Of a DNA stretch of 64,000 bases, positions 2,788 through 41,672 are shown piece by piece. The stretch's first letter is position 1, and each line of letters starts with the position of its first letter. The stretch covers positions 17,236,001-17,300,000 of the forward strand of contig NC_043003.1 in NCBI RefSeq assembly GCF_006345805.1, read 5' to 3'. Origin of the DNA: Octopus sinensis (taxonomy: Eukaryota). Made by a program: the position numbers and the translations under genes. Under the pieces are notes generated by a model. It did not search any database. It was not told the DNA's origin and was given only the letters and a program-made list of their open reading frames with translations.

Positions 2788-2827
<40 letters not shown>

Positions 2828-11151: not shown

Positions 11152-11185
<34 letters not shown>

Positions 11186-12027: not shown

Positions 12028-12422
12028 CTCTCTTTTACTTGTTTCAGTCATTTGACTGCAGCCATGCTGGAGCACTGCCTTTAGTCAAGCAAATCAACCC
12101 CAGGATTTATTCTTTGTGTGCCTAGTACTTATTCTATCGGTCTCTTTTTGCTGAACCACTAAGTTACGGGGATGTAAACACATCAGCATCGGTTGTCAAG
12201 CGATGATGGGGGAACCAACACAGACAAATAAACACATACACACACACACATACGCATATGACAGGCTTCCTTCAGTTTCCGTCTACCAAATCTACTCACA
12301 AGGCTTTGGTCAGCCCGAGGATATAGTAGAAGACACTTGCCCAAGGTGCCATGCAGTGGGACTGAACCTGGAACCATGTGGTTGGTAAGCAAGCTACTTA
12401 CCACAAAGCCACTCTTGCACCT
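12028..12422 (-). mobile_element. tRNA-derived SINE, family A
   Basis: Full-length reverse-complement match to 62428-62888. Confidence 0.8.
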
Positions 12423-14277: not shown

Positions 14278-14583
14278 GTATGGGTGCAGAACCGAAAGGC
14301 AAACCTATGTTCACCAGTAAACCTGCAATCCGACAGCTCGGAGAAAAACTAATCATAGAGTGTAAGCTCACAGCTGATCCTAAGCCAGATATAGCTTGGC
14401 AACTCAACAACAAAACTGTATCTCAAAATCAGCGGATTAAAATGCAAATCAGATCTCTTGGTAAAAACCATACAATCTCTTTAGAAATCAATAAGGTAGG
14501 CAGTGCAGATGGTGGTGAATATAAGGCTATTGCTAAAAACACTGCTGGTGAATCTACAGCCACCATCAATTTAAACTTTGAAG
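14278..14583 (+). CDS. unc-22: Twitchin exon C, complete Ig2 (SMGAEPKGKPMFTSKPAIRQ...GESTATINLNFE)
   Basis: Acceptor gtgttttag, donor gtaagt; 306 nt, phase 1 to 1; lies within ORF 14241..14615. Confidence 0.94.
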
Positions 14584-15019
14584 GTAAGTTTTATTCAGAC
14601 CAAGCAATAAAATAAATCCTATTTTTCCTTATAACCACTTTTTCTATTCTATCACTTAAGTGCACTTTCTGATCAAATACAGCTTTCCTATGGCACTACA
14701 CTCTTCTTTCACCATGATTGACACATTTCTGTGGCACCTCTTTTCTTGCCTAATACTTTTAAGGTAACAGGAATCAAATAAATTCTTCAAACTCTAACTC
14801 TCAACCTTTCTCCTCCTATTAATTTCACTATAAAATTATTAATCAATTTAAATACTATATCATCTAAATATCTCTCTAGTAAAATATTTCTTAATTCAAT
14901 AGACATCTACATGAATCTTTGGAGCTATCTCTAATTATATATCTATCTGTCTGTCTATATATCTCTCTATCTCTACATCTAATCAATCTGTATGTGTATA
15001 TATACATACATACATATGT

Positions 15020-15056
<37 letters not shown>

Positions 15057-16787
15057 CTCACATACACACAGACAAACACACAGAGTCTCAGGATTTATTT
15101 TTATTGATTAAAAACAGATCAATATCAAGATTTTGAATTCTGTTGGTAGCTGAAGACAGAAACCCTGTTGATTTGCTGCTGATATTTGGAGAACTGTATA
15201 AGGCAAATTCAATTGCATTCCATAGCTGAGGTTTGGAAACTTTCAAAGACAGCTCAACTAAACTGTTCAAAATGTTAATTTATTAAAGCAACATATTTCT
15301 GGATTCATGCAGTTTGTAAAAAGTTATACCTAAACCAGTGTAATTCGATATTGTACAAAATTTCAGTGTTACTTTATTTTGTCCAATCTAACATTTATTC
15401 TAACCACGAGTGATGTCCTCAAAATTTGTCTGCTTTAAATATTAAGTCACACCCATGTGATTCATTGTCTGCTCGTGTGTGCGTATATTTGTGTGACAAC
15501 GTGTGTATTTATGAAATTTCAAGCAAAAAGCTTGATCCACTGAGCAGCGTTTTTATACACTCTTATAAATATACTCATATAATACATACACATATACCCA
15601 GCCCATGATCGTTCAATGATCAAGATGCGAATTTTTATTAGGAATGTAAAATAAGATAAGTTTAAATATTAATTGGGACCAGATTCCTGTAGAAAAATGT
15701 ACAAAGAAAACATAACATCAATTATTTGTCCTTTAAAACCAGGCATGTCACTTGATTTGTTTGCAGTGATCCAAAAATGGCACTTTTAAAAATGTCCAGT
15801 TCAACAAACATGAAATTACAGAATACCATCAATTTTAAACAGAATAGCATTCAAATAATTCAGGAAGTTTGCAAAATAAACAAAGCATTTCAAATAAGAT
15901 ATATGCAAATTAAAATTAGTTCCCATTAATTTTGTCGTGTTAAAACCAACCAATTAAGTTCAGGAAATGTATTTGGTAAGTAATGGATTCCACTACTGAA
16001 GTTACAGAAAAGGTCACCAGATAGCTTTGGAAAGTGAGCAGACCAGTGGTTTGCTACTACTGGGATACAGACTGGAACTTGATCAACCCTGACTGGTGAG
16101 GGGGCCTGATGTAAGATCTAAAATGCCCCAAGATACCAGAAACATTACTGATGATGCACTCCAGAGTATCTGTGAGATGTACCTTGTGGATAAAGAAGAC
16201 TGTGGGAACAAATTTAGCAATTTTTGGCAAAAAATGTACCCTTTTACCAAGCTATAACAAAAAGTTAGTGAAATATTTAAAATGTTTACAGTTAGATAGA
16301 CAAATTTTTTATTATTTTCTGAGATTTTACAAAAACAACAAAAATATTAAAAACAAAAACAAAAATATTTTAAAACATCAGAAATAACCTTGTCGTATAT
16401 TAAGTGGGTTGTTAACAATGATCTAAGATTAATCTTTGTTACTTGGTTGCAACAAAATTGTAAAATATTTAAACAAAATTGAAGACTAACAGAGAATGTG
16501 TCATGTGACATTCAGTCATATGATTTGTTGCCACAGATAGGTATGGATTTGAAATCAACTTTAATATCATTAGCTATTTAGTCAGCTGTGTATCTTACAT
16601 AATGACATATATACTCTGTCGATAGGCCAGTTATTGTGGTATTTGTCCTAAGATAACATATCTTAGGGACTTCCTGTGTTAAAAACACGATATATCATAG
16701 AGAAGCAAATACTCATCCCAGCAGCAGCTGCCAAGTGAGAATGCCAGAAGCATTTTGGGCATTTGGAGCCTTTACAATAGCATGGAT

Positions 16788-17124
16788 GAAGATGTATGGC
16801 TCAGTGGTTAGAGCGTTGGGCTCGCAATCATGAGGTAGTGAGTTCAATTCCTGAACCAGGCTTTGTGTTGTGTTCTTGAGCAACACACTTTTTTTCACAT
16901 TGCTCTAGTTCACTCAACTGTAGAAATGAGTTGAGATGTCACTGGTGCCAAGCTGTTATCAGCCTTTGCCTTTCCCTTTGATAACATTAGTGGCATAGAG
17001 AGCGGGGGGGCTGGTATGCTTGGGTGACTGTTGGTCTTTCACAAACAACTTTGCCTGGACTTGTGCCTTGGAGGGTAACTTTATAGGTGCAATCCCATAG
17101 TTATTCATAACAGAAGTGGGGTCC
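16788..17124 (+). mobile_element. tRNA-derived SINE, family C
   Basis: Head tggctcagtggttagagcg...gagttcaattcc; shared tail ...tcatgaccgaagggggtc. Confidence 0.8.
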
Positions 17125-18712
17125 TTACTTTTTACAAAGGTGTTTCAAAACCTTGTATAATTGTAATTACTACAATAAACCAACTTTCCAAATTATGAAA
17201 TGAACTAAGAATACCAAAGAGATTTGCAAGTTAAGCATTCTTCCTGAATAATATTGAATTTTTAAAAAATTAAATTTGGTTATATTTTTCTTTTTAATTT
17301 ATATTTACAATATAAGTTGATTTGATTACAAAAATTTCTGAAAATATTGTTTTAAATTTTTACTTAGGCAAACATATGTGCTGTTAAAAATATACATCTA
17401 GTTTATAGTTTAATTAACATTACACAAATATATCTTTAAAATTTCATCAGCTTATCAAAGATTATGCACTTTAAACTCTACTGATCTAACTTTATTGCAC
17501 ATAGTGACAAAACAACAGAACATACATATTCTCAAAACAAGTACTGCTTTAAAATTAGATAACTTTAGATCATAGCTGCAATGAAATTAACCCATCACTG
17601 CTTTATTTTCTATGCTGTTGGTAGATATCAACAAAATCTTCATATAATATGAATGTTTAAAATAAAACTTGCGCAAAAGCGACATCTGTTATATGCAGCT
17701 AATTAGACAGTATATTTTATAGATTCATTTGCTTGCTTTCCATTTGTTGACACAAATGATGTGAACAATATTTTATGCTGTTTAAAAGAAAACATGGTAT
17801 AAAGGTTTGCTTTAAAAGTTTTGAAATACTAACCTGCGCTCTAAACAGCTTGATTGAAGACATTCATTTGCATTTGCATACAATCGCTTTGAAGTGATAT
17901 ATTTTTTAAGAAAATTCCATTTAATTTGTATATTGTAAAAGAAATAAAAATTAAGCGCACTCATATAAGAATAAGCTTATAGTTTATTTTAAGTTCTCAA
18001 TATTTATCGTTATATCTTTTTGATATTGTTTTTCATTTGTACAAAAACTTTCTTTAAAATCAATCACATGATTTGTTTTATAATACATCATTCTTAATAA
18101 ACAACTCTTCACAGAATTTTTCTATTTCCTTAACATTCTAAATTTGTCTACTTTTTAACTTTTTTTTTTTCTTTACTTGTAAGTGCACTAACATTTTATA
18201 TTTTTCAAAAACTTGTTTTAACTTTATATAAAGGACAGAACATTGAAAATGCTCTGCCAACACAAACAGCAGATAAAAGCATCACAGGAAATATTCTGTA
18301 AATAATCATTTTCGAGCTGATGCATAAATCTGCTTTGTGTAGATTTTTAATAGAAGAAATACATATTAATGTATGAATATGTTTGAATTACCTTCATACA
18401 TGAAGTCTATATATTTTTTTCTATTTTTGAAATGAGGTTCAATAAGGTTATTATTATTTGATTTCTAATATGAGGTACTTTGATAATAGTTAATTACTGT
18501 CAATTACAATTATAAATAAATATACAATCTAGTTCTTTCTTTAGGTAAACAGGATTTATGCAGAATTAAATTTTGGCTTATGAATTCTATGCTTGCTTAT
18601 TTCTTAGATTTTTATTCTCTCACTCCACTCTCTGAGTCTCACTCTACTGTTTGTCTTTCTGTTCTCTAGTTCTTACTTTCTTGTTATCTGTACATGTATA
18701 CATTTATGTATT

Positions 18713-18747
18713 TCATCTTGTGTGTGTATGTATATATATATATATAT

Positions 18748-18797
<50 letters not shown>

Positions 18798-18798
18798 A

Positions 18799-18884
<86 letters not shown>

Positions 18885-18930
18885 TGTAAATATATATATA
18901 TATATGTAAATATATATATATATATATGTA
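18713..18930. repeat. Long (TA)n/(CATA) microsatellite, one of many in the window
   Basis: Direct inspection; source of the YIYI-type ORFs. Confidence 0.95.
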
Positions 18931-19818
18931 AATAATAAATATTAGGGAATAAATCCAAATTTACAGGGAAAAATCAGATTTAGGATAAATCCAATTTTAT
19001 AGTAAAATATTATAAATATTATTAGAGACAAAACCACTATTTTGCAAAACAAACAAGGAAAGACTTAATCAATACATAAAATTTTAGAAGGAATAGGAAT
19101 CTTTCAAAGATAATCCCAAACAGCGGTTCTATCTTACCTGTAAAATCCATAATTTACGAAATTGCGGTATTACACTCAATATACAAAATTATCAATATTA
19201 TATAAATAATAAATATTAGGGAATAAATCCAATTTACAGGGAAAAATCAGATTTAGGATTAAATCCAATATTAAGTCTTCTTGTTTGTTTTGCAAAATAG
19301 TGGTTTTGTCTCTAATAATATTTTATATATGTAAATATATAAATATATATGAATATATAAATAAATATATATAAATATTATATATAAATATATATATAAA
19401 TATATATTTTATATATTTTATATATATTTTATATATATATATAAATATATATATATAATATATACATAGAGTGAGTAATGAGGATGAAATTATAAGAGTA
19501 GGAAGCTATTGCTTTAAAATTGACACCATTGAATTTAAGGAAATTTCTGTTGTTTCATTAATCCCATTAAAAGTACATTAATTATTATATTGAAATAATT
19601 ATGTTATTAGAAACAATCAAATTTAACAATATTCTTTATATGATATAATATAATATAATGTATAAATATAACTCTAAGTTAAACTTATGAAAATCTATAT
19701 TTAAATATGTATGTTCATTTTATCATAATAGAAATTATATATTTAGCTTTTTGGAATTGCCTACTTTTATAATATACTTTAATATTTTTTCTACTTTCTT
19801 TTCATTTCCATAAAATAG

Positions 19819-19828
19819 GTAAACAAAC
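19819..19828 (+). CDS. unc-22: 10-nt microexon GTAAACAAAC (G-K-Q-T linker between Ig2 and Ig3)
   Basis: Long pyrimidine tract (tttttctactttcttttcatttcc) then aaaatag, donor gtaagt. It converts phase 1 (exon C end) to phase 2 (exon D start), which the frame requires. Confidence 0.8.
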
Positions 19829-20054
19829 GTAAGTATTTAATCAATTTTTTCTCAATTTCTACAATGGTTAATTGTTTGATATTTTTAGTCTCGTTTTAAC
19901 TGTTAATCAAATGTGAGAAATATACATAAAAATATGTTAAGTAATGGAATTGAAAATTGCTAAAATTAATAAACAATATAAAAATTAAGTTTTTAATTGT
20001 TTATCATTAAAGTACCTAAATCTCAATATTTTCTTTTACTTTTTCTTCTAATAG

Positions 20055-20271
20055 GGAAGCTGGCAAGGCTCCACATTTCACCCAAAAACCTATTATAAAA
20101 CAACCTCAGAAAAATCAACTTACAATGACATGCAATCTTGAATCAAGCTCCCAACCTGTTATCAAATGGTTTCGTGAAGCTACAGAAATCAAGCAAGGTG
20201 GACGTTACACTATCCAAACAACTAAGGACCCTAAAGGTCCTAATATGTATATTATCGTGCTGACAATCAAA
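20055..20271 (+). CDS. unc-22: Twitchin exon D, first part of Ig3 (EAGKAPHFTQKPIIKQ...MYIIVLTIK)
   Basis: Acceptor ttttcttctaatag, donor gtaagt; phase 2 to 0. Confidence 0.92.
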
Positions 20272-20325
20272 GTAAGTTACATTTGAAGATATGAATAACA
20301 GTTTATGACTGTAAGATTATAAGAC

Positions 20326-20612
20326 TGTGAAGGCACATGGCTCAGTGGTTAGAGCGTTGAGCTTATGATCAAGAGGTTGTGAGCTTGAATCCCAGACCGG
20401 GCTGCGTGTTGTGTTCTTGAGCAACACACTTTATTTCACGTTGCTCCAGTTCACTCAGCTGTAGAAATGAGTTGTGACATCACAGGTGCCAAGCTGTATC
20501 GGCCCTTGCCTTTCCCTTGAATAACACTTCTGGCATGGAACTTTACCCGGACATGTGCCTGGGAAACTTTCTAGGTGCAATCCAATAGTCTGTGTCGTGA
20601 CCGAAGGGGGTC
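20326..20612 (+). mobile_element. tRNA-derived SINE, family C (internal deletion)
   Basis: Matches 16788-17124 and 36210-36524. Confidence 0.8.
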
Positions 20613-21304
20613 TCAGAAGATTAGAAAGGTTAAAAGCTCTAAAATCGTCCATAGACATTTTAATCATCAAAAATAATTACACTCTTACCCAGTTATGCTT
20701 AAATGATACCTGAGTGTTACAGCATTAGGGAATAGCATAAATTAATTATATGTCATGTGATCCTTTCCTGTAATATTCTAACAACATGTTTGTTGTAACA
20801 GAACTGTGACCTCTCATTGTAGAGAGATAGCAGCTCAAATTGAAGAGAGTTCCTGATCTCTGAACTATAGTCTCTGTTGAGTGATATTACTCTAGGGGTC
20901 TTTCAGATGAACCCATTTCATCTGCTTGTATTTGTAATTGTACTCTTTCAATCATTATCTGACGTTCGTAACCATAGGTGAGGATAGGTATGGAAACCGA
21001 ACCGAAGTTAGTAAGTTTGGCTAATTTTACCAATCACAGAAGACCTAGTTTGGAATCCAGCAGGAAATTGTAAAGACAGCTGATTCTGATAGGAACCTAT
21101 GGAGGAAGTACCTGAGGACTCTACTCCAACTCTCCCTGAAATAGTGAGCAGTGAAAATGGATGGATATAACGATATCAATGCCTGGTCTTCAAGATTTAT
21201 TTACGTATTTATTGATTAATTTGTGGGGTTTTCTACTCTCACTTATTGCTATGTCCTTCTTTCTTATTCTTAACTATATCTAAGTTTTAAATTATTATTT
21301 GCAG

Positions 21305-21395
21305 GATCCAGCACCAGCCGATGGTGGAGTATATAAGTGTGTTGCTTCAAATGAGAATGGTGAATCTAATGCAAATATTACACTGAATTTCCAAG
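21305..21395 (+). CDS. unc-22: Twitchin exon E, end of Ig3 (DPAPADGGVYKCVASNENGESNANITLNFQ)
   Basis: Acceptor ttatttgcag, donor gtaaat; phase 0 to 1. Confidence 0.92.
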
Positions 21396-22341
21396 GTAAA
21401 TGATTAAAACACAAAATTTTAAATGACTGTGATTTACATGAGTGTATACAAATGTAACCATTGGTGACTTGACCATATTTTATTAAAAAATTTGCAGTTT
21501 ATTTCAACATTGATCATTTCAACAAATTCATGTGAATATATATATATATATATATATATACATACATATGTACATATGTACATGCGTGCGTATGTAGGTA
21601 TATATATATATTATATATATATTTTAGGTTGTTAATTTGAAAGAAACTGTTTCATATTACAAGAAATAACCATTCTTTTCTACAAAGCTTTTCATATATA
21701 ATCACATTGTTATTCATTTAATTAATGAGTTATTCAACTCATAAAGGTATCGAGTGTGTCAACTTTGCACTACTGTACTACCTACAGCAGGTAATTATAC
21801 TACCACAAGACCTTACTTACATCCATCTGAACCTCTTTGTTGAAAATTACAGCTGAGCTAAGGACAAAATGCAGAGCCACTGATTAGATATGAAATGTTG
21901 ATTTCATACAGATTATTATGTTAGATTATGTAGGCTCTATCCTACCATATGCTGTTTTATAAAATTACATTTTGAATTCCTAAGATTTTAAATCCCACTG
22001 TGAATTATCACTTGAAATAATATATGTTAATAATATACATTAAGTTTAAGGAAATTTCCTTAAATTTTCTAATGCAATGTTTAAGTTAGTATTTGATATA
22101 GTCAATGAAATGAGAAGTAAAATTCTGTTTAGAAATGATAATGCAGTGAAGAAATGACTATATTAGTCATTGACTAATATTATTTTAATTATTCAAGCAA
22201 GTACTGGCTTGTTTCTATATTATTAGACCTTCTCAGAAAAAGCAAACTCTACACTTCAATACATTTTCTGCTTTAGTGAGCAGTGACGAGATAGTCAACT
22301 CTTAAAGACATTTTAAAAATAAAACTTTAATATATTTTCAG

Positions 22342-22568
22342 ATACAGAAAAAACTGAGCCTGCTGGCAAAGCACCAAATTTCACAGAAAAACCTAAAATA
22401 GCACAAGACGCATCAGGGAAAAATATCCACATGGAGTGTAGTTGCATAGCTGATCCAAAACCCACAATTACTTGGTATAAAGGCAGCACCCTTTTGAAAG
22501 AAAACAACAGATTGAAATTGAAAACAACCCAAGATAAAGATAAATATACCTTTATGTTGGATATATTG
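22342..22568 (+). CDS. unc-22: Twitchin exon F, first part of Ig4 (DTEKTEPAGKAPNFTEKPKIAQD...KYTFMLDIL)
   Basis: Acceptor tatattttcag, donor gtaaga; phase 1 to 0. Confidence 0.92.
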
Positions 22569-23061
22569 GTAAGAGAACGAATTTCTGCTCTAATTTTTCT
22601 CATTTAACATTTTGTATAGAATTACAAATCATGGTTAACTGTGTAACTAAGTGAATTGTAATCCAGCTAACTTATTAGCATCAAATGATTTAAGCACATT
22701 TTTTACTAGTTTCAATTACTGGAATGTGACTGTCAGAGCACTATCTACAATCATATTGTTTCCAGCTCTTAGTTTAGTCTGATATTTTTTTAAGCAATTT
22801 CTGTTAGTTAAATCAAACTGTTAATTAAACTGCTACATGACAGGTCATAAAGGACTTATTTTCCTGGTATCCGTGCATCGTATATGATACACATTCTCAA
22901 TTTTTCACAACAACCAGAATAACAAGGGATTTATGAAAAGAAAGGTTTATATTGCTCAGAACAAGGAGTAATGAATATATAATAGTACATCATATGTGAT
23001 GTGCAGAACACTTGGCTGATAATCCAAGATCTCAAAAGAATTGATATATATATATATATAT

Positions 23062-23348
23062 GTGGAGGCACAATGGCCCAGTAGTTAGGGCAGCGGACTT
23101 CCTAGACCAGGCGTTGTGAGTGTTTATTGAGCGTAAACACCTAAAGCACCACGAAGCTCCAGCAGGGGGTGGTGGCGATCCCTGCTGTACTCTTTCACCA
23201 CAACTTCCTCTCATTCTTTCTTCTGTTGGCCTGCTCGCTTAGCCAGCGGGGTGGCATCATTTGAAGGCTAAAACAATGCAAAGCGCATTGTGACCAGCGA
23301 TGTGTAGCAACATCTGACAGCCTAGTCGGTCACGAGGATCACAGTGAT
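23062..23348 (+). mobile_element. tRNA-derived SINE, family B variant
   Basis: Head gtggaggcacaatggcccagtagttagggcagcgg. Confidence 0.7.
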
Positions 23349-23601
23349 ATATTGATATATATATATATATATATATACACATGTATATATATCATACACC
23401 TACTAATAGAGTACCAATACATATTACCCACCAACTAAACCAAATTAACCTCCAATAGCTAAAAGTTTGAAACCAAGCATGGATGTTTGGGATAAATTCA
23501 TGAAAATGCTTTGGACAGACAAAGGGTCAAACAAAAATTTCTCATTTTCTGAAGGGCTATTTAAATTTAACTAATTACCTTTGTTTTATTCTATGTTTTA
23601 G

Positions 23602-23693
23602 AATTTCACTAAAGATGATGCGGGTGTGTACAAGGTGGTCGCTAAAAATGCACATGGAGAGGGCACTGCAAACATCACTCTCAACTTAGATGC
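23602..23693 (+). CDS. unc-22: Twitchin exon G, end of Ig4 (NFTKDDAGVYKVVAKNAHGEGTANITLNLD)
   Basis: Acceptor ctatgttttag, donor gtaagt; phase 0 to 2. Confidence 0.92.
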
Positions 23694-23939
23694 GTAAGTG
23701 CATGTTGCTAAGTTTTATTTTACTTAAATGATGTTTATTTTGTTGAAGGATTTTCGTTTGAAGACATTTCCAGTTGAAGTTGATTTTAATATTACCCCAG
23801 AGTGGGCAGCGAGCTGGCAGAATTGTTGACACGCCAGGCAAAATGCTTAACTGCATTTTGACTGTCTTTACATTGCAAATTCAAATTCCTCAAGGAATGT
23901 AAGCAACAACAGTGTGATAGTATGTACAGTCTTATTTAA

Positions 23940-24160
23940 CCCCTTCGTTACGGTATTTATTTTGAGGTGCTCTGTGTTTCTTTCAATTACTTTAAATATA
24001 ACAAAGAACTTAATAAAATAACTTAGTTATCATTAGGCTAGTGTTAGGAATATAAATTGTAACTAAGGTTTGGTGGAAGATTTTAATTCAAATCTTATGA
24101 AAACAAGACATTTGTACTACAGAGCCAGAGCCAGTTTCAGCCGGGTTGGTAACGAAAGGG
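23940..24160. mobile_element. piggyBac-like MITE
   Basis: TTAA on both sides; TIRs CCCCTTCGTTAC / GTAACGAAAGGG. A second copy starts at 63960 and runs off the window. Confidence 0.75.
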
Positions 24161-24507
24161 TTAATATGTTGATGTACATTCAAACATGGAAAGACAATAC
24201 GCTGTACAAGGTATCTCAAGAGAAATTCTCCTTATAGACAATATAAGTGTAAACACCACTAGGCCATGAATGATGTAACCATACCATAGGATGCATGTAT
24301 TTCTGTGTCATTGCACTGCATCAGCTACATATACTGAGCTGTCATTTATGGCTAATATAAGAGCTGGTCGCTCTTATATTAGAATAGCAAATGCTATATT
24401 TTCTGATATATATAAAAAAGCTTTCCCAAAAGAGAATAAATCAATTAAAGGTGAAGATACTTGAATTTTTGAATAATAAAGATGATTGAAAGCAATCTTT
24501 TATCTTT

Positions 24508-24740
24508 TAATTGTTTCAATCATTAGACAGCAGCCATGCTGGGGCACCACCCTGAAGAATTTTTTCACAGTATTTAATTTTTTAAAGCTTAGTACTTATT
24601 CTAACAATATCTTTTGCTGAGCTGCTAAGCTATGGGGATGCAAACACACCAACACTGGTTGTCAAGTGCTGGTGGAGGACAAACACAGATACAAAGATGC
24701 ACACACATAAGCACACGCACACACACACACACACACACAC

Positions 24741-24773
<33 letters not shown>

Positions 24774-24947
24774 GTGTGTGTGTATATGTATACAATGGCT
24801 TTTTTCGGGTTCCATCTATCAAATCTACTCACAAGGCTTTGGTTGGCTTGAGGCTACAGTAGAAGACATTTGCTCAAGGTGCCATGCTGTGGCACTGAAC
24901 CCAGAACCATGTGGCTGGGAAGCAAGCTTCTTACCACATAGCCATGC
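24508..24947 (-). mobile_element. tRNA-derived SINE, family A (diverged)
   Basis: Reverse-complement similarity to the other family A copies. Confidence 0.7.
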
Positions 24948-25010
24948 CAAAACTTCAACATTGTCAAAGGTGTTTTAAAAATGATGCACTTGATAATTAG
25001 GAAATATAAT

Positions 25011-25604
25011 ATATTCTTCTGTTGTGTCTTGAGAGAGTAATTTTCTTTTTGTGCCTTATAATTTAAAACAAGACTATTGAAAAGGTTGCAAGATAAAACG
25101 GAAATTTTAGGAAAATAAAAATAAGTGGAAATTTTATCAGTGAGTGTGTTAAATTATAAGGTGGAGGCGCAATGGCCCAGTGGTTATGGCAGCGGACTCG
25201 CAGTCGGAGGACCACAGTTTCGATTCCCAGACCGGGCGTTGTGTGTGTTTATTGAGCAAAAACACCTAAAGCTCCACGAGGCTCCAGCAGGGGGTGGTGG
25301 CGACCCCTGTTGTACTCTTTCACCTCAACTTTCTCTCACTCCACTCTTACTTCCTGTTTCTGTTGTACCTGTATTTCAAGGGGCCGGCCTTGTCACTCTC
25401 TGTGTCACGCTGAATATCCCTGAGAACTACGTTAAGGGTGCACGTGTCTGTGGAGTGCTCAGCCACTTACACGTTAATTTCACAAGCAGGCTGTTCCGTT
25501 GATTCGGATCAACCGGAACCCTCATCGTCGTAACCGACGGAGTGCTTCCTCCTAAATTATAAGACACAAGAACAAAATTACTCTCCCCAGACACAACAGC
25601 ATAT
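25011..25604. mobile_element. TIR (MITE-like) element with a family B SINE (25161-25545) nested inside
   Basis: About 52-bp inverted arms at 25011-25064 and 25553-25604; the same arms occur at 40872-41076. Confidence 0.6.
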
Positions 25605-25695
25605 GCTTCAACACACGAACTCATATAAAGAATCTTGCAAACCAAATCCAAAAACAAAATATAATATTCTTCAATTCTATTTAATTCTTTGGCAG

Positions 25696-25951
25696 CCAAC
25701 AAAAGGACAAAGATGCAGAGAAAGATGCAGAAAAAGATAAAGAGAAAAAGACAATAACGTTAACAGATAAAGCCACAACTAAAATTGAACTGGATAAAAA
25801 GCGAGTAACATTTGAACAGAAAGTTGATAGCAAGGAGAAGCCAACTGCCCAATGGTTTTTTGGAAACAATCCTTTGAAAAGTGGTGGGAGATACAAGATG
25901 GATGTGTCACAGAAAGATTCAAGTTACTATGCTAGCATGCAAATGGATGAG
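25696..25951 (+). CDS. unc-22: Twitchin exon H, charged linker and first part of divergent Ig5 (AQQKDKDAEKDAEKDKEKKTITLTDK...PTAQWFFG...YYASMQMDE)
   Basis: Acceptor ttctttggcag, donor gtaatt; phase 2 to 0, matching exons G and I. Confidence 0.88.
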
Positions 25952-26001
25952 GTAATTAGAAAATATTTAATAACTTTTTATATCAGTTACAAATATATAT
26001 A

Positions 26002-26401
26002 TACTTAGCAGTATGACCCGGCGTTGCTTGGGTTTGTTTCGACCTTTTAGAATTGGAATTTTTGAAAAGTAAAAAGTTTGCATTATGTAGCTTGTTATTC
26101 TCTATAAGTGAACATTTTTCTGATTGAAATACACCGAAAAATGGCGACACAGCAGTCAAAAGATCGTTAAAAAATAGGTATCTTCATAGAAAAAAAAGGC
26201 ACCTTTTTGATGTAAATAATTTTTGGTGTTAACATGGTTTGATTTGAATTTTATCTTCTACGGAATGAAGAGCAAGCCTTCTTCTATCATACTCTCAATT
26301 TTGGTCAACTTGCGCCACAGGGTCTCGGTGGAGATAGTGTTAGTTGAAGGCTACCAAACCTGCCATACACAGACAACTTCAGCTTTATATATATAAAAGA
26401 T
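26002..26401 (+). mobile_element. Probable non-autonomous Helitron-like element
   Basis: 5' acttagcagtatgacccggcgttgcttggg and 3' ctttatatatataaaagat resemble the ends of Lep1/HINE-type elements. Confidence 0.45.
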
Positions 26402-27269
26402 GTGAAACACACATACACTAAGTGTGTGGTTTTCTAGTTCATGGGTAGGCTGTGCTCATAGGCATAAAAGAATATACTATCATCAATGTGCCTGATGTTG
26501 AAATGCCTGGAAATCATAGACAAGCAAGGCAACTCACATAAGATCCCATTCAGGAGTGATGGTCACAGATGTTTCATCATTTTTGTGACCTATCAATAAT
26601 GTGTACCCAAACAAGGCTTGATGCAAGCTAAATCACATTCTATGACTATATGCTGAATGGTGTAAGAACCATCTGTTGGTATATCCCAATATATAGATAA
26701 GTGCACACACATAAAATTAAAATATATTTTCCAAGGGAAGTAACTCTGTACATTTGCTTTCTTTAGTGGAAGAATGACAGCATTAAAATATATATATATA
26801 TATTTTTTGAGAATTGAGTTACAATCTGGCTCTCATGATTCTGCCAAAATAGGCTAATAAAATAGAATTATATATGTCTAACAAGGAAGTGCAACTTATC
26901 TCAAAAGATCCAACTGCTGTTAGATATCATTATAATATTTTTAGACCAACAAGATGAATTTAAAAATCAAATTATTAATATCTTGCATAATGTTTTTGGA
27001 CTGGGAATTCTCCTGAATATAAACTGCCTTTGTAACCCTTTGTCATTGGAATGCTAAATATGTTTTATAATGAAAGGCCTGGATGATCCTTCACTGGCTT
27101 CAATGCTGAGTGTTGTTCTATCAATGGAACTACTTTCTTTTTATATCATACTGGCTGAGTATTCCACAGCCCCTTGTAATCTTTAATGTAATCCTATGAC
27201 TGAATCAGTGTAATTCAATGTAATACAGGGCAGATCTTTTGAAATTACAAATGCTATCCCTTTTCTCAT

Positions 27270-27373
27270 GAAGGTGCGTGGCTTAGTGGTTAGGGTGTCA
27301 GCATCATGATCGTAAGATTGTGGTTTCGATTCCTGGACCGGGCGACGCGTTGTGTTCTTGAGCAAAACACTTT
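27270..27373 (+). mobile_element. Family E SINE head fragment
   Basis: gcgtggcttagtggttagggtgtcagcatc...gtttcgattcctgg. Confidence 0.75.
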
Positions 27374-27471
27374 AAGTAAAATTTGTCAAGAATTCTTAAA
27401 CACTTGAGTGATATTAAAAAAAAAACAAATTCAAAAGCTTCAATATATTTTCAAACTTCTTTTACCTTCAG

Positions 27472-27559
27472 GTCACCACCAAAGATGCTGGTCCTTACAA
27501 ATGTGTAATTCAAACACCATTTGGTGAAGGTGTTCAGCTAATGAAATTGTCATCAACAC
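27472..27559 (+). CDS. unc-22: Twitchin exon I, end of Ig5 (VTTKDAGPYKCVIQTPFGEGVQLMKLSST)
   Basis: Acceptor cttttaccttcag, donor gtatgt; phase 0 to 1. Confidence 0.9.
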
Positions 27560-27669
27560 GTATGTATTTCTCTTGTCATAAAAATTTTGGATTGATATTA
27601 CAAATATTAGAATTATTAATTTAATTAGTATCATATTTCAATTAATAACTATCTTATTAATCTTTTCAG

Positions 27670-27731
27670 AACTGATCCCTCCCAAAGTGAAGGGCGACCC
27701 TCCAAAATTCATCACAAAACTAACATCAAAG
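27670..27731 (+). CDS. unc-22: Twitchin exon J, linker and A strand of Ig6 (QLIPPKVKGDPPKFITKLTSK)
   Basis: Acceptor tcttttcag, donor gtaaga; phase 1 to 0. Confidence 0.9.
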
Positions 27732-28596
27732 GTAAGACAAGATATTGATTTGAATATAACTAAAATTTATGGTACTTTCTTTTATGGGAGGAGCTAACCT
27801 CTTCATTTCCAAAGATGGAAAATGTTTTAGCGTTAAACGTATTTTAAGGTGGCAAGCTTGCAGAATCGTTAACATGCCAGGCAAAATGCTGAGTTGGATT
27901 CTGTCCATCATTATTTTCTGAATTCAGATTCTGCCAAAGTCGACTTTACCTTTCATCCTTTCAGGATTGATAAAATAAGAACCAGTTTATTGTCAAATCC
28001 ATTACAGCATTGGATTGAATGTCTTGTAATGTCTGTTCTGACTCTGTAGTCTGAGATCAGCAACTTTGCCTTCTATCTTTTCATGGCTGAGAAATAAAGT
28101 ACCAAAGCAGTCTGGATCGGTGGCACTATCGGAGTTTGCTACTTGAAACTTTGTCATATCAGTTCTGGCTCTTTGCATTCTCACAACAACACTTGTGACG
28201 ACATCAGGGTGGAGTGTATTGGCTCAAGTTGATGGCCCTTCCCTTGCATAAACAACAAGGGCATGGAAAAGGGAAATTTGCATGCTCGAGCTACTACAAA
28301 ACTTCCTCAAAAGAGTTTGCCCAGGCCTGTGCATACAAATGCTGTTGTATAGTCAGTGTTGGCTTCATGAAAGCTTTCTATGCACAGTGATAAAGAGTAC
28401 TAAACAACTAATGTTTAGTATTGATGGAAATATGTATTACTTACCAAAGTCTTCATTACTTTCTGTTTTAGAAAAAGCATTAAACAAAGTACCTTAATAG
28501 ATAATCTAATGCAGAAGCCAACTTTATGAAATAGTATTGTTTTCAATTACAAGATGTACCTTTTTCCTGAATGAAATTAAGAGAATATTTTGTTGT

Positions 28597-29120
28597 GACC
28601 CCCTTCAGTCATGAATGACCATGGGATTGCACCTAGAAAGTTACCCTCTGAGGCACAAGTCTGGGCAAGGTTGTTTATGGAAGACCAGCAGTCGCCCACG
28701 CATACCAGTCTTCTCTCTCCATGCCACCGATGTTATCCAAGGGAAAGGCAAAGGGGCCGATACAGCTTGGCACCAGTGATGTCACAGCTCACTTATTAAT
28801 GTACAAGTGGCTGAGCACTCCACAGACACGTGTACCCTTAACGTAGTTCTCAAGGAGATTCAGCATGACACAGTGTGACAAGGCTGGCCCTTTGAAATAC
28901 AGGTACAACAGAAACAGGGAGAAAGAGTGAGAAAAAGTTGTGGTGAAAGAATATAGCAGGGTCCACCACCATCTCCTGCCGGAGCCTCGTGGGGCTTTAG
29001 CTCCACGAGGCTCCAGTGTTTTCGCTCAATAAACACTCACAATGCCCAGTCTAGGAATCAAAACTGCGATCCTACGACCGCGAGTCTACTGCCCTAACCA
29101 CTGGATCATTGTGCCTCCAC
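28597..29120 (-). mobile_element. Chimeric B/C SINE, reverse orientation
   Basis: Reverse complement of the chimera at 1346-1800. Confidence 0.75.
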
Positions 29121-29362
29121 TTAGAGAATATACTGGTTTCAAATTTTGGTAGAAGGCCAACAATTTTGGGGATGGGGTAAATCAATTACATCGGCCCTTA
29201 TGATCAGTAAGTACTAATTTTATCAACCTCAGATGGATGAAAGGCAAAAATCACCTTGGCAAAATCTGAACTCAGATTGTACAGACAGATGAAATCAGAG
29301 AATCTATTACAATAAGGTTATGTAAAGTATCTCTACATTATTTTCATTTGTTCTCATTACAG

Positions 29363-29606
29363 ACATTCAATATAGGAGAGCCTATGGATATTACACTTAA
29401 AGTTGCAGGAACTGAACCAATTACCACCATATGGTATTTTAATGATAAAGAAATCAAAAGTTCCTCAGCTGCAAATATTTCTTATGAAAGAGGTACTGCT
29501 CGATTCTATATGTCCAAAGTAACACCAAAAGACGCTGGCGTGTACACAGTTGAATTGAAGAATCCTGTTGGATCTGAAAAAGGATCTGCAAATATGATTG
29601 TTAAAG
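29363..29606 (+). CDS. unc-22: Twitchin exon K, body of Ig6 (TFNIGEPMDITLKV...DAGVYTVELKNPVGSEKGSANMIVK)
   Basis: Acceptor ttctcattacag, donor gtaagc; phase 0 to 1; lies within ORF 29348..29623. Confidence 0.93.
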
Positions 29607-29807
29607 GTAAGCAAATCATTTAACTAAGAAAAAGAAAATAAAACAAACCAAAAGCCCTATTTATTGTTAAAGTGCAAGGTTATTCTATGGAGATAAAATC
29701 CATTGATTTAACCCAACCTTCTGCCTCAGTATATGTTGTAGGGGCCCCACTGTTGATATTGAATATAATAGCCTGCATAGAATTTTGACTGACAATTCTA
29801 ATAGTTT

Positions 29808-30222
29808 TGTAGTAAGAAGCTTGCTTCCCAACCATATGGTTCTGGGTTCAGTCCCACTGCATGGCACCTTGGGCAAGTGTGTTCTACTTAGCCTTGGGGT
29901 GACCAAAGCCTTGTGAGTGGATTTGGTAGACAGAAACTGAAAGAAGCCCATTACATATATCTATATCTATATGTGCGTGTGTGTATGTGTGTGTGATTGT
30001 GTATGTGTATGTTTGTGTGTCTGTGTTTGTACCTCCACCATCACTTAACAACCGATGTTGGTGTGTTTATGTTCCTGTAACTAGCAGTTCGGCAAAAGAG
30101 ACTGATAGAGTAAGTATATGGTTTACAAAGAATAAGTCCTGGGGTCGATTTGTTCGACTAAAGGCAGTGCTCCAGCAAGGCCACAGTCAAATGGCTGAAA
30201 CAGGTAAAAAGAGTAAAAGAGT
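29808..30222 (+). mobile_element. tRNA-derived SINE, family A, ending about 60 nt upstream of exon L
   Basis: Matches 62428-62888. Confidence 0.8.
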
Positions 30223-30281
30223 ACGTTACATTTGAAGTTCTTGTATATGGCATTCTAAAATATGTCATCTATTTATTACAG

Positions 30282-30654
30282 AGGACGAGAAGAAGAAGCA
30301 GAAGGAAGAAGAGATGCAACGAAAGGAAGAGGAGAGAAAGAAGCAAGAGGAAAGAGACAAATTAGAGATGGAAGAGAAAGAAAAGAAAAAGAAGAAGATG
30401 ACAAGAAAAAGGAGGAGGAGAAAAAGAAATTGGAATTGAAAAAGCAAGAAGAGGAAAAGAAGAAGGCAGAAGAGGATAAAAAGAAGAAGGAGGTTGATGA
30501 CAAGAAGAAGAAAGAGGATGAGGAGAAAAAGAAGAAAGAGGATGAGGAGAAAAAGAAGGAAGAGGAAGAGAAAAAGAAGGAAGAGGAAGACAAAAAGAAA
30601 AAGGAAGACGAAGAGAAAAAGAAGAAAGAGGAAGAAGAGAAAAAGAAGAAAGAA
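30282..30654 (+). CDS. unc-22: Twitchin exon L, about 125-aa Lys/Glu-rich low-complexity segment; 1-nt frameshift near 30381-30390 as written
   Basis: Acceptor atttattacag, donor gtatgt. The 5' part reads EDEKKKQKEEEMQRKEEERKKQEERDKLEMEEKEKK in the frame set by exon K. The 3' part reads EEDDKKKEEEKKK... in the frame of ORF 30262..30687. Confidence 0.8.
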
Positions 30655-30739
30655 GTATGTAAATTTGTTAATTATTTACATTTGTAAAGGCATGTGCATA
30701 TACTCACACATATATACACATCTACACAAATGAGTATAT

Positions 30740-30773
<34 letters not shown>

Positions 30774-30803
30774 TGTATGTATATGTATGTGTGTGTAAGT
30801 GCA

Positions 30804-30844
<41 letters not shown>

Positions 30845-32010
30845 TAGAGAAAAAAACACTCTTATGTAATTAAAACAATGATAGGCATAAAACATAAATG
30901 AAAAAATAAAATATATGATAAAACATTTATCTAAATCATAAAAAGTACATAATAATAAATAAACAGTATGTAATAAGTTAAAAGACCACACATGTTTCAT
31001 GGCTATAACTTCAATTCGAATTACAATCAAATTTAACTTATATACCTTTTTTTTTATTTTTATGTACTTTTTGTGATCTAGATAAATGTTTTATCGTATA
31101 TCTTATTTTTTCTATATGATATGGTTTATGTCTATCATTGTTTGAATTACATAATAGTGGTTTTTCGCTAATTTATATATATTATTTATTTATATTGTGA
31201 GATTTGATTTAATACTAAATTGAATTTTTCCCTGTAAGTTTGGAGTTATACTCCCTAATATTATTATTATTATAATATATGCTTTTGGTGCAAATGGTTT
31301 TTAATTACGGTGCCATGATGTACAATCCTGTAACTAACAGTAATGGTATTTTTTTATATAAGCTTAAAGCTTATGGTGATCACCATGCAATGACTAAGGG
31401 AAATAGTCTAAAAAAAGAGGCATATAAAAGTAACACACACTTGGTCACGTTAACAAAGGGGTGTGAGTTCGACTCTCATGAGGATAGGAAAGCCTTCTTT
31501 TTTCTGTTGAGGGCTTATATGCCCCTATATTAGACCATTTTCCTTAATCACTGCATGGTAATCACCATAAGCTTTAAGCTTATATAAAAAAACACCATTA
31601 TATATATATATATATATATATAGTAATCCCTCATCATTTTGTGGTTCACCTGCCATGTACTCAGTCAAGGAAATATTGTATATATATATATATGTCATTG
31701 TTCAGTTTTATATCTATGTATGTACGTATGTATGTGTGTATGTATGTATGTATATGAATATGCATATATGTATGTATGTATGTATATATGTATGTATGTG
31801 TGTGTGTGTATATATATATTATGTATGTTTGTATGTATGTATATTTGTACCTTTACATCTTATTAATGATGATTGCTTTAAGACAACACAATTGTGTAAT
31901 GTCAGTTTTGTATATCATTTTCTCTTTGAGCTTGCTTTGAAAGCTTATATTAGTGTTTATAAATTTTATGCTCCAATCTAATGTCAGTTCATCTTTTTAC
32001 TAATTTCCAG

Positions 32011-32026
32011 AAAGCTGCTCCCAAGG
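32011..32026 (+). CDS. unc-22: 16-nt microexon AAAGCTGCTCCCAAGG (KAAPK)
   Basis: Acceptor ctttttactaatttccag (with a ctaat branch-like motif), donor gtaagt; phase 0 to 1, joining exon L to exon N. Confidence 0.82.
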
Positions 32027-32454
32027 GTAAGTAAACCTAATTATTTCTAAGCAAGTACTTAAATTCAAATAGGGTTTTTACATATTAAAAGAAAATTATC
32101 ATAATTTTTGGAAAACATGTCAGTTCATTTAAAATGTTTGCATCCTTCAACACATATAGTTCCATAAACAAAATACATTTGAGCAACAACTTAAAATTAA
32201 ATCATAATTAATATTATTTAATACACTCTCATTATGGAATACTGTGTAAAATTCCAGCTGTTGTCTGATGATATTTTTATATTAATTAAACTTCTTACAT
32301 AAATACAAGCTAATTCCATTTTCAGTTTTATGGGGATTATTTTTTCTTTAAAATCATACATATTGTTGTAGAAAGGGAGAAAAAAGACTGACAACAATAA
32401 TTTACATTTACCTACAGTAGAAGCAGAGATCGACTACACAGAAATAATCAACTA

Positions 32455-32968
32455 CCGTAAATCCTCGAGTATAGTCTGCCCTTGAGTATAATACGCAGGG
32501 GATTTTTAAGGGGCTGTACCTCTGAAAAACCTAAACCTTGTGTATAATACGCACCCCTCCTCTAACTTGAGTCAAGGAGGTCTATATAACGTCCTTGGTT
32601 TGTAAAAATGTATACGGTAACGTCCTTTATTATTATTGTATATATAACATAATGCAAACGTGTAGCTTTTTTGTGCATTTTGTTTGCAGAAAATAAAAAG
32701 AAATAACAGTAATAACGTTTAATAAATGTTGCTTACTGCAAGTTATGGATGATTCTTTTATGACTTCATTGCTTTCAGGCTTAGCTTAAGGTATTTTCGT
32801 GCCTGACATCACAAAATGTGTCTGAATAAACATTGCCGGACAACAAATAGAGATTCAGACATTGCTTAGAAAATATTTTTCATTTTTAACCTCGTATATA
32901 GTACGCACAAGAGGTTTTGACCTTTAAATTTTGGAGAAAAAATGCAGATTATACTTGAGGATTTACGG
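32455..32968. mobile_element. pogo/Tigger-like (Tc1-mariner superfamily) MITE
   Basis: TA on both sides; TIRs CCGTAAATCCTCGAGTATA / TATACTTGAGGATTTACGG. Confidence 0.8.
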
Positions 32969-33755
32969 TAATCATTTCAAATACTTGCATATATTAATTC
33001 CAGTGTGTCTGGCAGGATAATATGAATTTTATGCAGATACTGGTTCACAGAATACATATAACTGATTTCCAACCGACTTTTTTTTTATTGCTTTCATTCC
33101 CTGATTTTATTATTTCTTGTTATGTTTGTGCTACTATCAACAGACAACAAGTTAAGAAAATTTGCTTTAAATTTTATCAGCTATTCACATACCTGCATTT
33201 CATGTTAGACACAGCAGCAGAAATATTGGAATGAGACAAGTGGGCACAGCTGGTTGGATACTGATGATTTGGCATGGTTAACTGGACATTGAGCCTGTTT
33301 TGGCAACAGTACTTTTTGGCACTAGAGGCAAACATACACACACATGTGCGCACATGCATGCAGAAATATACGCATACAGATAGAAAGAGTGAGAAAGACA
33401 TTATTGTTTATTAAAACAACTTCCCTCTCCTTGTACACAGTGAAATATACTCACCTACATAAACAAAGAGACAGAAAAGAGAGAAGGGAAGAGAGAGAAA
33501 GGGAGAGAAAGAAAGGGTGAAAGAATGAGAGAAACATTAAACTGAGAAATAAAAGGCATCAAAATGCCTGATGTTAAGTCTGCATCAAATCAGCAATGTC
33601 CAAAACAGCTGTACCAAAACATCTCATACATGCTCAAGCAGATATATATATATATATATATATATAAACATCTAATATAGGATACAATTTTTCGAAAAAA
33701 ATTTTATCAATGGCCAGCATTTAAAAAAATACCATTAATGGTTAAATTTATATAC

Positions 33756-34041
33756 AACTTATAAACAAGGGCAAAAGAAAAAAATTCTAATGCCAAATAT
33801 GCTGAAAATAGACAAATTGTCAATAACCATATAATTTATCACTATAAACATGTGTCTCGAAGTAAGCCAACACAAATTTCTAAAATATTCCTAAAAAATT
33901 CCAACAGAATTTTTTAGAAATTTCTGCCAGCCTACTTTGAGACACGTGTTTATAGTGATAAATTATATGGTTATTGACTATTTGTCTATTTTCGGCATAT
34001 TTGGCATTAGAATTTTTTTCTTTTGCCCTTGTTTATAAGTT
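33756..34041. repeat. Fold-back with about 110-bp inverted arms between two (TA)n tracts
   Basis: 33756-33867 is the reverse complement of 33930-34041 with few mismatches. Confidence 0.85.
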
Positions 34042-35230
34042 TTTTATATATATATATATATATTCCATGTTAAGTAACTAAAATTTCTTATATGTCTCTT
34101 GATAGTTGCAATGACAATCCTCTTCATATGACTCCATTATATTTTTAATATAATTTGAAAATGCATGCATCTGTTTATTATTTGATTATTTATTTAAAAA
34201 TTTTTTTTTCTTTTGCGCTAATCAAACTCTGAAAGTACCCCACTTCATATACTTCAAAGGAAAATTCCTTGAAAAAAATTTCAGAATTGTACTTTCAAAG
34301 TTGCCAGCGGTGTTTGTTCGCGCATTCCCACCCATCCTAATTATTCCATGCTTTTTTGTTATATTTATGTCAAATCCATGTGTCATTGTGTATAAGTTTT
34401 TGTTCAGTTAGTTGTAACTACAGCTTTGAGTTTTTTTAAGACTTAATTATTTCTTGAATTCAGTTATTTAATGTTAATAGAATTGCACCACAGGAACTAA
34501 CTTTAAGTTTTGTTAATCAATGGTTGAATATATAATTTTTTCCTTTTTAGAATTATTCATTTCACCCTTTTGGTTACCCGTTACGTTGATAAAAAGTATA
34601 TTCATTCATTTTAATTAATGATAAGTGTTGGGTTGCAAATAATCTATCTTCAAATACTATTATTGTATTTCGTCACATGTAGATATTTTCTTAACAAACC
34701 AAATAACTTCATTATTTATATTTTATGTTTCTTTATTTAAAGCTAAAAGCATTTCCAAAAGTCAGGTGTTTTATTTCTAAGACCAGTTTTACACTTCAGC
34801 AATAAGAAAAATATTATCTGAAAACATTAACCACAAAGATATGAAATGATTAAAATTAAAGATTCGGCAAATTAATTATTTCTCAGCTACTTCTAGGTGG
34901 TTAGACTATAAGGCTGTTATCTTTCTCAGAATATTTTCAGTAAATTTAAGGTTCTGAAAAACACAATTATAAGTGACACAATATGTAGAAGTGGTGAGAA
35001 ATACTAATATTGTAGTAATTTATATAAATTTCTTTCAAGGGAAGAGGTATAATCAATTCAGTTGAATACTCACTGATAAAAGATTTAAGCTTGGAGTGTA
35101 GAGCACGGAAACTAAATGCAATGCATTTTGCCCAGCACCTCACCAATTCTGCTAACCCTTGTAGTACAAAATCTCACAGTTATATAAGTGTAGAGTTTTA
35201 CTATATATTTCTTAATCTTTACTCTTTCTT

Positions 35231-41453: not shown

Positions 41454-41672
41454 CTGCCGAACCAGAGCCGAAAGAAGAAGCGCCCGCGCCCGCGCCACAG
41501 CCGCCTCTTCCCACTGTCAATGAGCCCATCGCTGATGAGGATGCAGGTAAAACACCAAAATCCCGATCTCCCTCACCCCAATTCCAAGCTCCAAACAAAG
41601 ATATGCCAAAAAAGGCTAAGTCTCCTCAGCCATATCGGAAACAACCTACAACTATTTTTGAGTACGAAGAAG
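41454..41672 (+). CDS. unc-22: Twitchin exon N, Pro/Glu-rich PEVK-like (AAEPEPKEEAPAPAPQPPLPTVNEPIADEDA), with a proximal donor after 41546 or a distal donor after 41672
   Basis: Acceptor cttgctatcacag; GC-rich island in an AT-rich intron; both donors (gtaaaa, gtaggt) are phase 1; lies within ORF 41387..41680. Confidence 0.8.

Follow-up and report, generated by a model that had tools for sequence, protein, structure and literature searches.

A repeat-built, E/K-rich exon with a predicted single alpha-helix opens the Ig7-Ig8 linker of a twitchin-like gene in Octopus sinensis

The springs of titin-family proteins are usually described as disordered PEVK-type coils and unfolding Ig domains. E4K4-type sequences, on the other hand, form ER/K single alpha-helices (SAHs) via i to i+4 salt bridges, a motif that is well known and occurs widely, and twitchin and projectin are known to have charged PEVK-like linkers. 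An exon at 30282-30654 of the window, i.e. the whole 64-kb stretch of Octopus sinensis DNA analyzed here, is made up largely of lysine and glutamate codons and raises the question of whether a long charged helix could be part of a twitchin spring. An original prediction, made from the nucleotide sequence, had placed this exon between Ig6 and a PEVK-like segment of twitchin and had proposed an SAH of about 18 nm. We asked which reading frame the exon uses, where it lies in the gene, whether it is conserved and what kind of structure its product is likely to adopt.

Exon boundaries, composition and reading frame

The E/K exon was found to be exactly one exon-like unit with the boundaries originally assigned to it. 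Its acceptor AG lies at 30280-81, preceded by a pyrimidine tract (tctatttattac), and its donor GT at 30655-56 (gtatgt). Purines account for 93% of the 373 nt (A 220, G 126, T 15, C 12), and a whole-window scan identified the exon as the sole 120-nt stretch with at least 85% purine or pyrimidine in 64 kb. Using Tandem Repeats Finder, a 24-bp period was detected (15.8 copies, 68% matches, score 187), in good agreement with the proposed unit of roughly 24 bp, together with a second period of 45 bp in the 3' half (30454-30655). The Pro-free tract rich in K, E, D and R that had been described is likewise present: the frame starting at 30283, on which that description was based, is open for 124 codons with 86% K/E/D/R and no Pro. 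The openness of this frame is weak evidence because 15 T in 373 nt rarely yield stop codons. An exact look-up of the 141-aa open reading frame of the window in this frame found no record.

The frame actually used is set by the upstream Ig7 exon, which ends in phase 1 at 29606 (GTT AAA G/gt, the slash marking the splice site). The codons of the E/K exon consequently run from 30284, where the true frame begins EDEKKKQKEEEMQRKEEER. In the window, the 30284 frame reads EDEKKKQKEEEMQRKEEERKKQEERDKLEMEEKEKKK, next MTRKRRRRKRNWN, and then reaches a TGA stop, and no open frame of the window copy joins the rest of the gene. The translation given in the original prediction, which follows the 30283 frame, represents the true protein from ca. 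30394 (EDDKKKEEEKKKLELKK...EEEEKKKKE), but its first ca. 40 residues (GREEEAEGRRDATKGRGEKEARGKRQIRDGRERKEKE), with an out-of-frame start reading GREEEAEGRRDATKGRG..., do not belong to it. The true frame of the window copy is thus the 30284 frame upstream of 30391/30392 and the 30283 frame downstream.

A second O. sinensis copy was available on contig VCDQ01001320.1 of GCA_006345805.1 (L003), which we treat as an independent, older assembly. Here, an extra A at 30391/30392 fuses both good halves into one open frame. L003 corresponds to window positions 1..34583, where its contig stops, with 99.46% identity, 48 mismatches and 41 indels. Its E/K exon comprises 401 nt, the additional sequence compared with the window being one A, one AAG and one 24-nt unit. 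The entry frame is open from phase 1 to 0 over 133 codons plus the split first codon, yielding 134 residues, while the other two frames contain 2 and 5 stops. With its frame restored, the window exon encodes 125 residues.

The 1-nt deficit of the window is most likely an assembly error and less likely a variant allele. This assignment is based on the indels between the two assemblies, 24 of which are 1 nt long, making this the commonest difference, and one of which breaks a conserved Ig exon in L003. The latter lacks one base at window position 14523, within the Ig3 exon (14241-14612), and it is because of this loss that the Ig3 domain is missing from the public gene model P0003.

Table 1. Features of the linker region and of dispersed repeats in the 64-kb window (window coordinates; a slash marks a splice site)
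Feature	Position	Strand	Description
Ig7 first exon	27670..27731	+	..LIPPKVKGDPPKFITKLTSK; splice sites read, sequence in P0003
Ig7 second exon	29363..29606	+	TFNIGEPMD...SANMIVK; ends phase 1 (G/gt)
E/K exon	30282..30654	+	373 nt in window; enters phase 1 (codons from 30284), should exit phase 0
36-residue in-frame part of E/K exon	30284..30391	+	(E)DEKKKQKEEEMQRKEEERKKQEERDKLEMEEKEKKK; best conserved part across both species
Internal GC donor of P0003	30343..30344	+	AA/GCAAGA; deduced from model end ...EEERKKKLLPR
1-nt deficit site	30391..30392	+	window AAAAAG-AAGAAG vs GCA_006345805.1 AAAAAGAAAGAAG
87-residue in-frame part of E/K exon	30394..30654	+	EDDKKKEEEKKKLELKK...EEEEKKKKE; clearest K4E4 blocks
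Micro-exon, 16 nt	32011..32026	+	AAAGCTGCTCCCAAGG (KAAPK), phase 0 to 1; ttccag/.../gtaagt
PEVK-like exon	41454..41672	+	AAEPEPKEEAPAPAPQPPLP...PKSRSPSP...KKAKSPQPYRKQPTTIFEYEE; Pro-rich, phase 1 to 1
Candidate exon, linker end/Ig8 start	61630..61723	+	DEGRRASKAQKGARPQGPTFSKPAENKVVVE; assigned by sequence inspection only
SINE-like element copies	2623-2977, 12155-12426, 24586-24975, 29685-29951 (-), 40028-40402, 62465-62698 (-)		

Repeats are also found elsewhere in the window. Many copies of a dispersed SINE-like element, reading ...TKSTHKALVGPRL..., lie beside microsatellites, one of them within the intron just upstream of the E/K exon. An intronic minisatellite at 38068-38685 has copies that read as VHYVPVQMCGTLCTCSDVWYTMYLFRC-like open reading frames in all three frames, and a tandem duplication of ca. 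960 bp within 55605-57273 results in identical sets of open reading frames at 55605-56313 and 56613-57273. An apparent conserved block at 37739-37837 was discarded as an exon, being a dispersed repeat.

Position in the gene, public model and orthologs

Judged by its Ig array, the gene represents the N-terminus of a twitchin-like protein of the UNC-22 family. The Ig domains match, in collinear order, the N-terminal parts of proteins that carry the names twitchin, unc-22 and projectin. The NCBI protein P0003 ('disorganized muscle protein 1, partial [Octopus sinensis]'), found with the upstream Ig exons, is identical to the window exons and equals exons Ig2-Ig7. An exhaustive search with P0003 returned 423 proteins at E <= 1e-30, and the collinear N-terminal matches include twitchin isoform X7 from Anopheles coluzzii (7602 aa) and a twitchin-like protein from Ptychodera flava. 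The unique linker after the N-terminal Ig tract is present too, Ig7 being followed by the E/K exon, then the micro-exon (KAAPK) and the Pro-rich PEVK-like exon. Further family features, namely Fn3-Fn3-Ig super-repeats and a C-terminal MLCK-like kinase domain, fall outside the 64-kb window. The twitchin identity that had been proposed is in agreement with these results, but the domain preceding the E/K exon had been numbered one too low. It is Ig7 rather than Ig6, because the window's first Ig matches Ig2 of the cuttlefish protein P0022, whose Ig1 finds no counterpart there, Ig1 lying upstream of the window. The E/K exon opens the Ig7-Ig8 PEVK-like linker.

Downstream, the 16-nt micro-exon, which is also used by P0003, joins the E/K exon to the PEVK-like exon and is needed to keep the frame. 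The phases of this exon chain (1 to 0, 0 to 1 and 1 to 1) fit, therefore, with the E/K exon read in the restored frame only. The tail of the PEVK-like exon (41555-41659, PKSRSPSP...KKAKSPQPYRKQPTTIF) weakly aligns to the linker of the Batillaria protein P0082 (PK.RS.SP...KKAKS...PY.K.PTTI, E = 0.03), pointing to a conserved motif in a linker that diverges elsewhere. Because the PEVK-like exon leaves in phase 1 and the candidate exon at the start of Ig8 is entered in phase 0, more linker exons would be expected between 41.7 and 61.6 kb. An open stretch rich in acidic residues at 52674-52994 (NEEDVDGINMYPPSLRGMPDTDGYEADEDD...DDDFFNEDDEG) lies within this linker interval and could be another exon. 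The Ig5-Ig6 linker at 25694-25750 is likewise charged and repetitive (QQKDKDAEKDAEKDKEKK) and is short.

For mussel (Mytilus) twitchin, a PEVK-like domain and a phosphosite, D1, have been described between Ig7 and Ig8 (PMC12040844). A search for PKA sites in the octopus Ig7-Ig8 linker yielded KSRSPS in the PEVK-like exon and, just before Ig8, RRAS in the candidate exon, both as matches to the consensus only. RRAS may correspond to the mussel D1 site. In insects, the projectin PEVK region, which follows the N-terminal Ig tract, is highly divergent and alternatively spliced and consists of small exons; the number of Ig domains in this tract is 8 for insects and 7 for crayfish (PMC3835035).

P0003 is the only public gene model. 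Its C-terminal end runs from ...SANMIVK into EDEKKKQKEEEMQRKEEERKK and then KLLPR, i.e. it enters the E/K exon in the 30284 frame, uses just the first 61 nt and reads the micro-exon in a shifted frame, KLLPR rather than KAAPK. The GC donor deduced from this end (Table 1) may serve as an alternative 5' splice site or may result from misplaced spliced reads; GAAAGAA stands at the end of both the internal site and the true exon, which could lead to such misplacement. No transcript spanning the full E/K exon was found, and a protein search with the whole linker gave only unrelated E4K4-rich proteins and no ortholog. A protein search with Ig7 alone returned two exon-sized matches only and missed the identical P0003, so that an empty result there is not evidence of absence. 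The name of P0003 hides a twitchin N-terminus (Ig2-Ig7), and the model skips one Ig exon and truncates the E/K exon. With 1-nt indels in coding exons of both assemblies, annotation of the twitchin locus needs transcript-based correction.

Conservation of the E/K exon was assessed using a 110-kb ENA contig of another species (ERZ21867824; L001), which was reached via the Ig7 exon. Between L001 and the window the exons alone align (70-76% DNA identity), there being no alignable introns, and the Ig7 protein sequences are 82% identical. The Ig7 exon of L001 (9992-10228) has the same phase-1 end; an orthologous Ig7 exon also occurs in L002. About 1.4 kb downstream of the L001 Ig7 exon lies a purine-rich E/K exon of 302 nt with AG/GT splice sites (11624..11925). 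Its entry frame contains no stops, compared with 3 and 9 in the other frames, and leads from phase 1 to 0, encoding 101 residues. The start of the exon is conserved (EDEKKKKKEEEMKRKEEERRKNEE in L001, EDEKKKQKEEEMQRKEEERKKQEE in octopus), with 69% identity over aligned columns. We take the source of L001 to be a coleoid cephalopod because its similarity to octopus is at least as high as the octopus-cuttlefish similarity in other Ig domains; the repeats on this contig do not match those of octopus or of cuttlefish. In the 8 kb that follow the L001 E/K exon, neither the micro-exon nor the PEVK-like exon was found. L001 also carries a second Ig7-like exon (140-405, ca. 74% DNA identity to the window Ig7 exon) upstream of its Ig6 exons, which may point to an additional domain or to local duplication in this species or assembly. 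The cuttlefish locus L004 (75.7 kb) covers only Ig2-Ig3 because the introns are large, and hence yields no third E/K exon.

Helix prediction and competing explanations

The restored 134-residue peptide of L003 consists of 44% K, 38% E, 7.5% D and 2% R, has a net charge of about 0 and contains no Pro and no Gly. The charged fraction of the 125-134-residue peptide is 91-92%. Charge patterning was evaluated with simplified implementations of our own, as opposed to SCAN4CSAH, FT_CHARGE or Waggawagga. We defined a charge-pair score as the number of opposite minus like charge pairs at i+3/i+4 per residue. Scores of 1.15 (L003), 1.12 (window) and 1.00 (L001) were obtained, compared with 0.01 +/- 0.11 for shuffles of the same composition (z about 10) and 1.43 for an ideal (E4K4)12 peptide. 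The charges recur with a period of 7.8-8.1 residues, the power exceeding that of all shuffles, and the i+4 pairs are divided into 45-50 acid-to-base and 44-49 base-to-acid pairs. Only 7 of the 134 residues are hydrophobic; in any 28-residue window or register at most 2 of the 8 a/d positions are hydrophobic, and there is no heptad seam. By every sequence-level measure computed (charge, lack of Pro and Gly, i+3/i+4 pairs, period and lack of a heptad seam), the tract is SAH-like, as had been claimed.

Structure prediction points in the same direction. AlphaFold2 was run without alignment on the two in-frame halves separately and modeled each as one helix, comprising residues 2-86 of the 87-residue half (mean pLDDT 96.4) and residues 2-35 of the 36-residue half (pLDDT 97.9); used in this way it makes helices of most E/K-rich sequences and is blind to the difference between a monomeric helix, a coiled coil and a disordered polyampholyte. 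At 0.15 nm per residue, the predicted rod would measure 18.8-20.1 nm in octopus and 15 nm in L001, compared with 45-51 nm when fully extended, so the originally suggested length of ca. 18 nm holds (18-20 nm). A PDB sequence search returned a single low-complexity match, which was not significant (E = 0.076), and no match was returned when the predicted helix was searched with Foldseek. A single alpha-helix is the best reading of the tract as modeled.

How unusual such a tract would be for this gene family can be judged from the sequences directly after Ig7 in orthologs, where Sinanodonta, Batillaria and Anopheles have a linker in the same place. The octopus E/K exon has alternating K and E/D blocks, 0% Pro and a charge-pair score of 1.15. 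In the bivalve Sinanodonta (P0122), more than 20 PKPEEKKPAPKPEEKK repeats are found, with 30% Pro and a score of 0.02, i.e. the linker starts with Pro-rich PEEKK repeats. KKEEPPA repeats are present in the gastropod Batillaria (P0082; 21% Pro, score 0.27) and E/V/K repeats (KVELKKVERKE) in Anopheles twitchin (P0075; 1% Pro, score 0.05). The SAH-type charge pairing of the octopus tract is absent from all three of these linkers. Lymnaea shows a polar, non-repetitive start. The Pro-rich octopus PEVK-like exon itself has 23% Pro and a score of -0.03. As for presence and length variation across cephalopods and bivalves, which the original prediction had put forward as a check, the exon is present in L001 and its length varies (373, 401 and 302 nt), and the bivalve Sinanodonta has Pro-rich repeats instead. 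A 40-residue window with a charged fraction of at least 80%, no Pro and at most 1 Gly occurred in none of the 218 proteins retrieved, which together have 513,300 residues and are for the most part giant Ig proteins. The tract of octopus and L001 is therefore unusual within its own family and, in this small sample, looks cephalopod-specific.

Several other explanations have to be weighed against a free-standing helix. The exon may be real and yet encode a disordered polyampholyte, a Pro-free PEVK-like entropic spring arising from slippage of the purine-rich 24-bp repeat and forming no stable helix. The helix is, after all, a prediction, and linker sequence is hypervariable and composition-biased across animals (PMC3835035). 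Tract length also varies as it does in unconstrained low-complexity sequence, one 24-nt unit and 3 nt setting the two assemblies apart and ca. 100 nt the two species. However, a disordered polyampholyte does not sit well with a charge order that is non-random (z about 10) and has an 8-residue period above every shuffle, nor with the absence of any Pro or Gly from 134 residues, compared with 23% Pro in the PEVK-like exon. Further, experiments show natural ER/K tracts and E4K4-type peptides to be helical, and the AlphaFold2 pLDDT values lie at 96-98. Taken together, we consider a disordered tract unlikely. A coiled coil, or a charged docking surface for a filament protein such as myosin, paramyosin or actin, would also differ from a free-standing spring. 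Coiled coils are a frequent prediction for E/K-rich helices, certain single helices bind partners, as is reported for the INCENP helix and microtubules (PMC4571873), and regulated binding is known to take place at linker regions of twitchin (PMC12040844). With just 7 hydrophobic residues in 134 and no 28-residue window exceeding 2 of 8 hydrophobic a/d positions, we regard this explanation as very improbable.

A different kind of objection is that little of the tract might reach the protein at all, either because the window represents a genuine frameshifted allele or because the exon is removed, wholly or from the GC donor at 30343 onwards. The entry frame of the window does reach a TGA, P0003 does continue from the first 61 nt through a GC-AG intron to the micro-exon, and skipping the E/K exon and the micro-exon together would preserve the frame (phase 1 to 1). 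Against a frameshifted allele, L003 and the distant ortholog L001 are both open through the entire exon with matching phases, and 1-nt indels, the commonest difference between the assemblies, break a conserved Ig exon as well. Use of the GC donor, in turn, shifts the frame not only of the micro-exon (KLLPR compared with KAAPK) but also of the PEVK-like exon, and the GAAAGAA shared by both sites offers a way in which spliced reads could be misplaced. Loss of the tract from the protein by either route seems quite unlikely to us.

Proposed mechanism and comparison with known systems

We lean towards the reading, which we hold to be probable, that the E/K exon is the first exon of the twitchin post-Ig7 linker and encodes a monomeric, semi-rigid ER/K helix of ca. 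19-20 nm. Such a helix would connect Ig7 in series to the disordered, Pro-rich part of the linker and, at rest, serve as a spacer holding Ig7 ca. 20 nm from the remaining linker. At low load, it would unwind non-cooperatively to ca. 45-50 nm and refold, by analogy with the myosin-10 helix: placed between titin I27 domains, that helix retains its helical structure, shows non-cooperative unfolding without a peak at forces below 30 pN and is predicted to fold again (PMC4183817). At modest load, the octopus helix would thereby provide ca. 30 nm of extra length before the PEVK-like coil stiffens and long before Ig unfolding. The length of the exon would change by whole 24-bp (8-codon) units, as it differs between the two O. 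sinensis assemblies and between species.

More tentatively, and with considerable doubt on our part, coleoid cephalopods might have swapped the Pro-rich start of the Ig7-Ig8 spring for a repeat-built ER/K helix of adjustable length (ca. 15-20 nm), making a two-stage element that other molluscs lack. If true, this element would couple, in series, a helix that unwinds at roughly constant low force and an entropic PEVK-like coil. A helix beside the PKA-regulated part of the linker could then tune the passive mechanics of obliquely striated hydrostat muscles. More generally, a long free-standing charged helix in a titin-family spring would add an element that extends at approximately constant low force and refolds fast, and cephalopods would lend themselves to comparison with the twitchins of bivalves, gastropods and insects, in which Pro- or Val-containing repeats are retained at this place. 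The apparent novelty lies in the combination, with the twitchin linker of cephalopods beginning with an exon that encodes an SAH-type tract. Our search of the literature, which was incomplete and mostly covered non-subscription sources, found nothing linking a single alpha-helix with twitchin, projectin or UNC-89 beyond chance co-occurrences.

Among giant muscle proteins, E/K-rich low-complexity springs are known from C. elegans TTN-1, with predicted coiled-coil and charged repeats, and from crayfish connectin, with SEK repeats. By their descriptions, these are different genes with repeat units different from those of the octopus tract. The closest counterparts by position are the PEVK-like linkers of Mytilus twitchin (Ig7-Ig8) and insect projectin (PEVK and NTCS-1, Ig8-Ig9), which occupy the same place after the N-terminal Ig tract and share with the octopus linker an E/K bias, small exons including a micro-exon, divergent sequence and variable length. 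The alpha-helical linkers of myomesin are likewise helices in series with Ig domains and are proposed to be reversible strain absorbers (PMC4142248), a role similar to the one suggested here; they are, however, short and packed on the neighbouring Ig rather than long, charged and free-standing, and have no homology to the octopus tract. In terms of sequence character, the tract most resembles the SAH domains of myosin-10, myosin-6, caldesmon, INCENP and the CAF-1 KER, being highly charged, free of Pro and Gly and without a hydrophobic seam, with acid and base blocks of a period of ca. 8 and dense i/i+4 pairs (PMC4183817, PMC5812594). These domains likewise act as linkers between two modules, the octopus helix being a predicted one. 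Compared with the myosin helices, the octopus tract is almost Arg-free (K 44%, R 2%) and its blocks are more regular. Unlike all of the SAH domains listed, it lies inside a titin-family elastic linker, beside a Pro-rich segment, and is encoded by one repeat-built exon of variable length.
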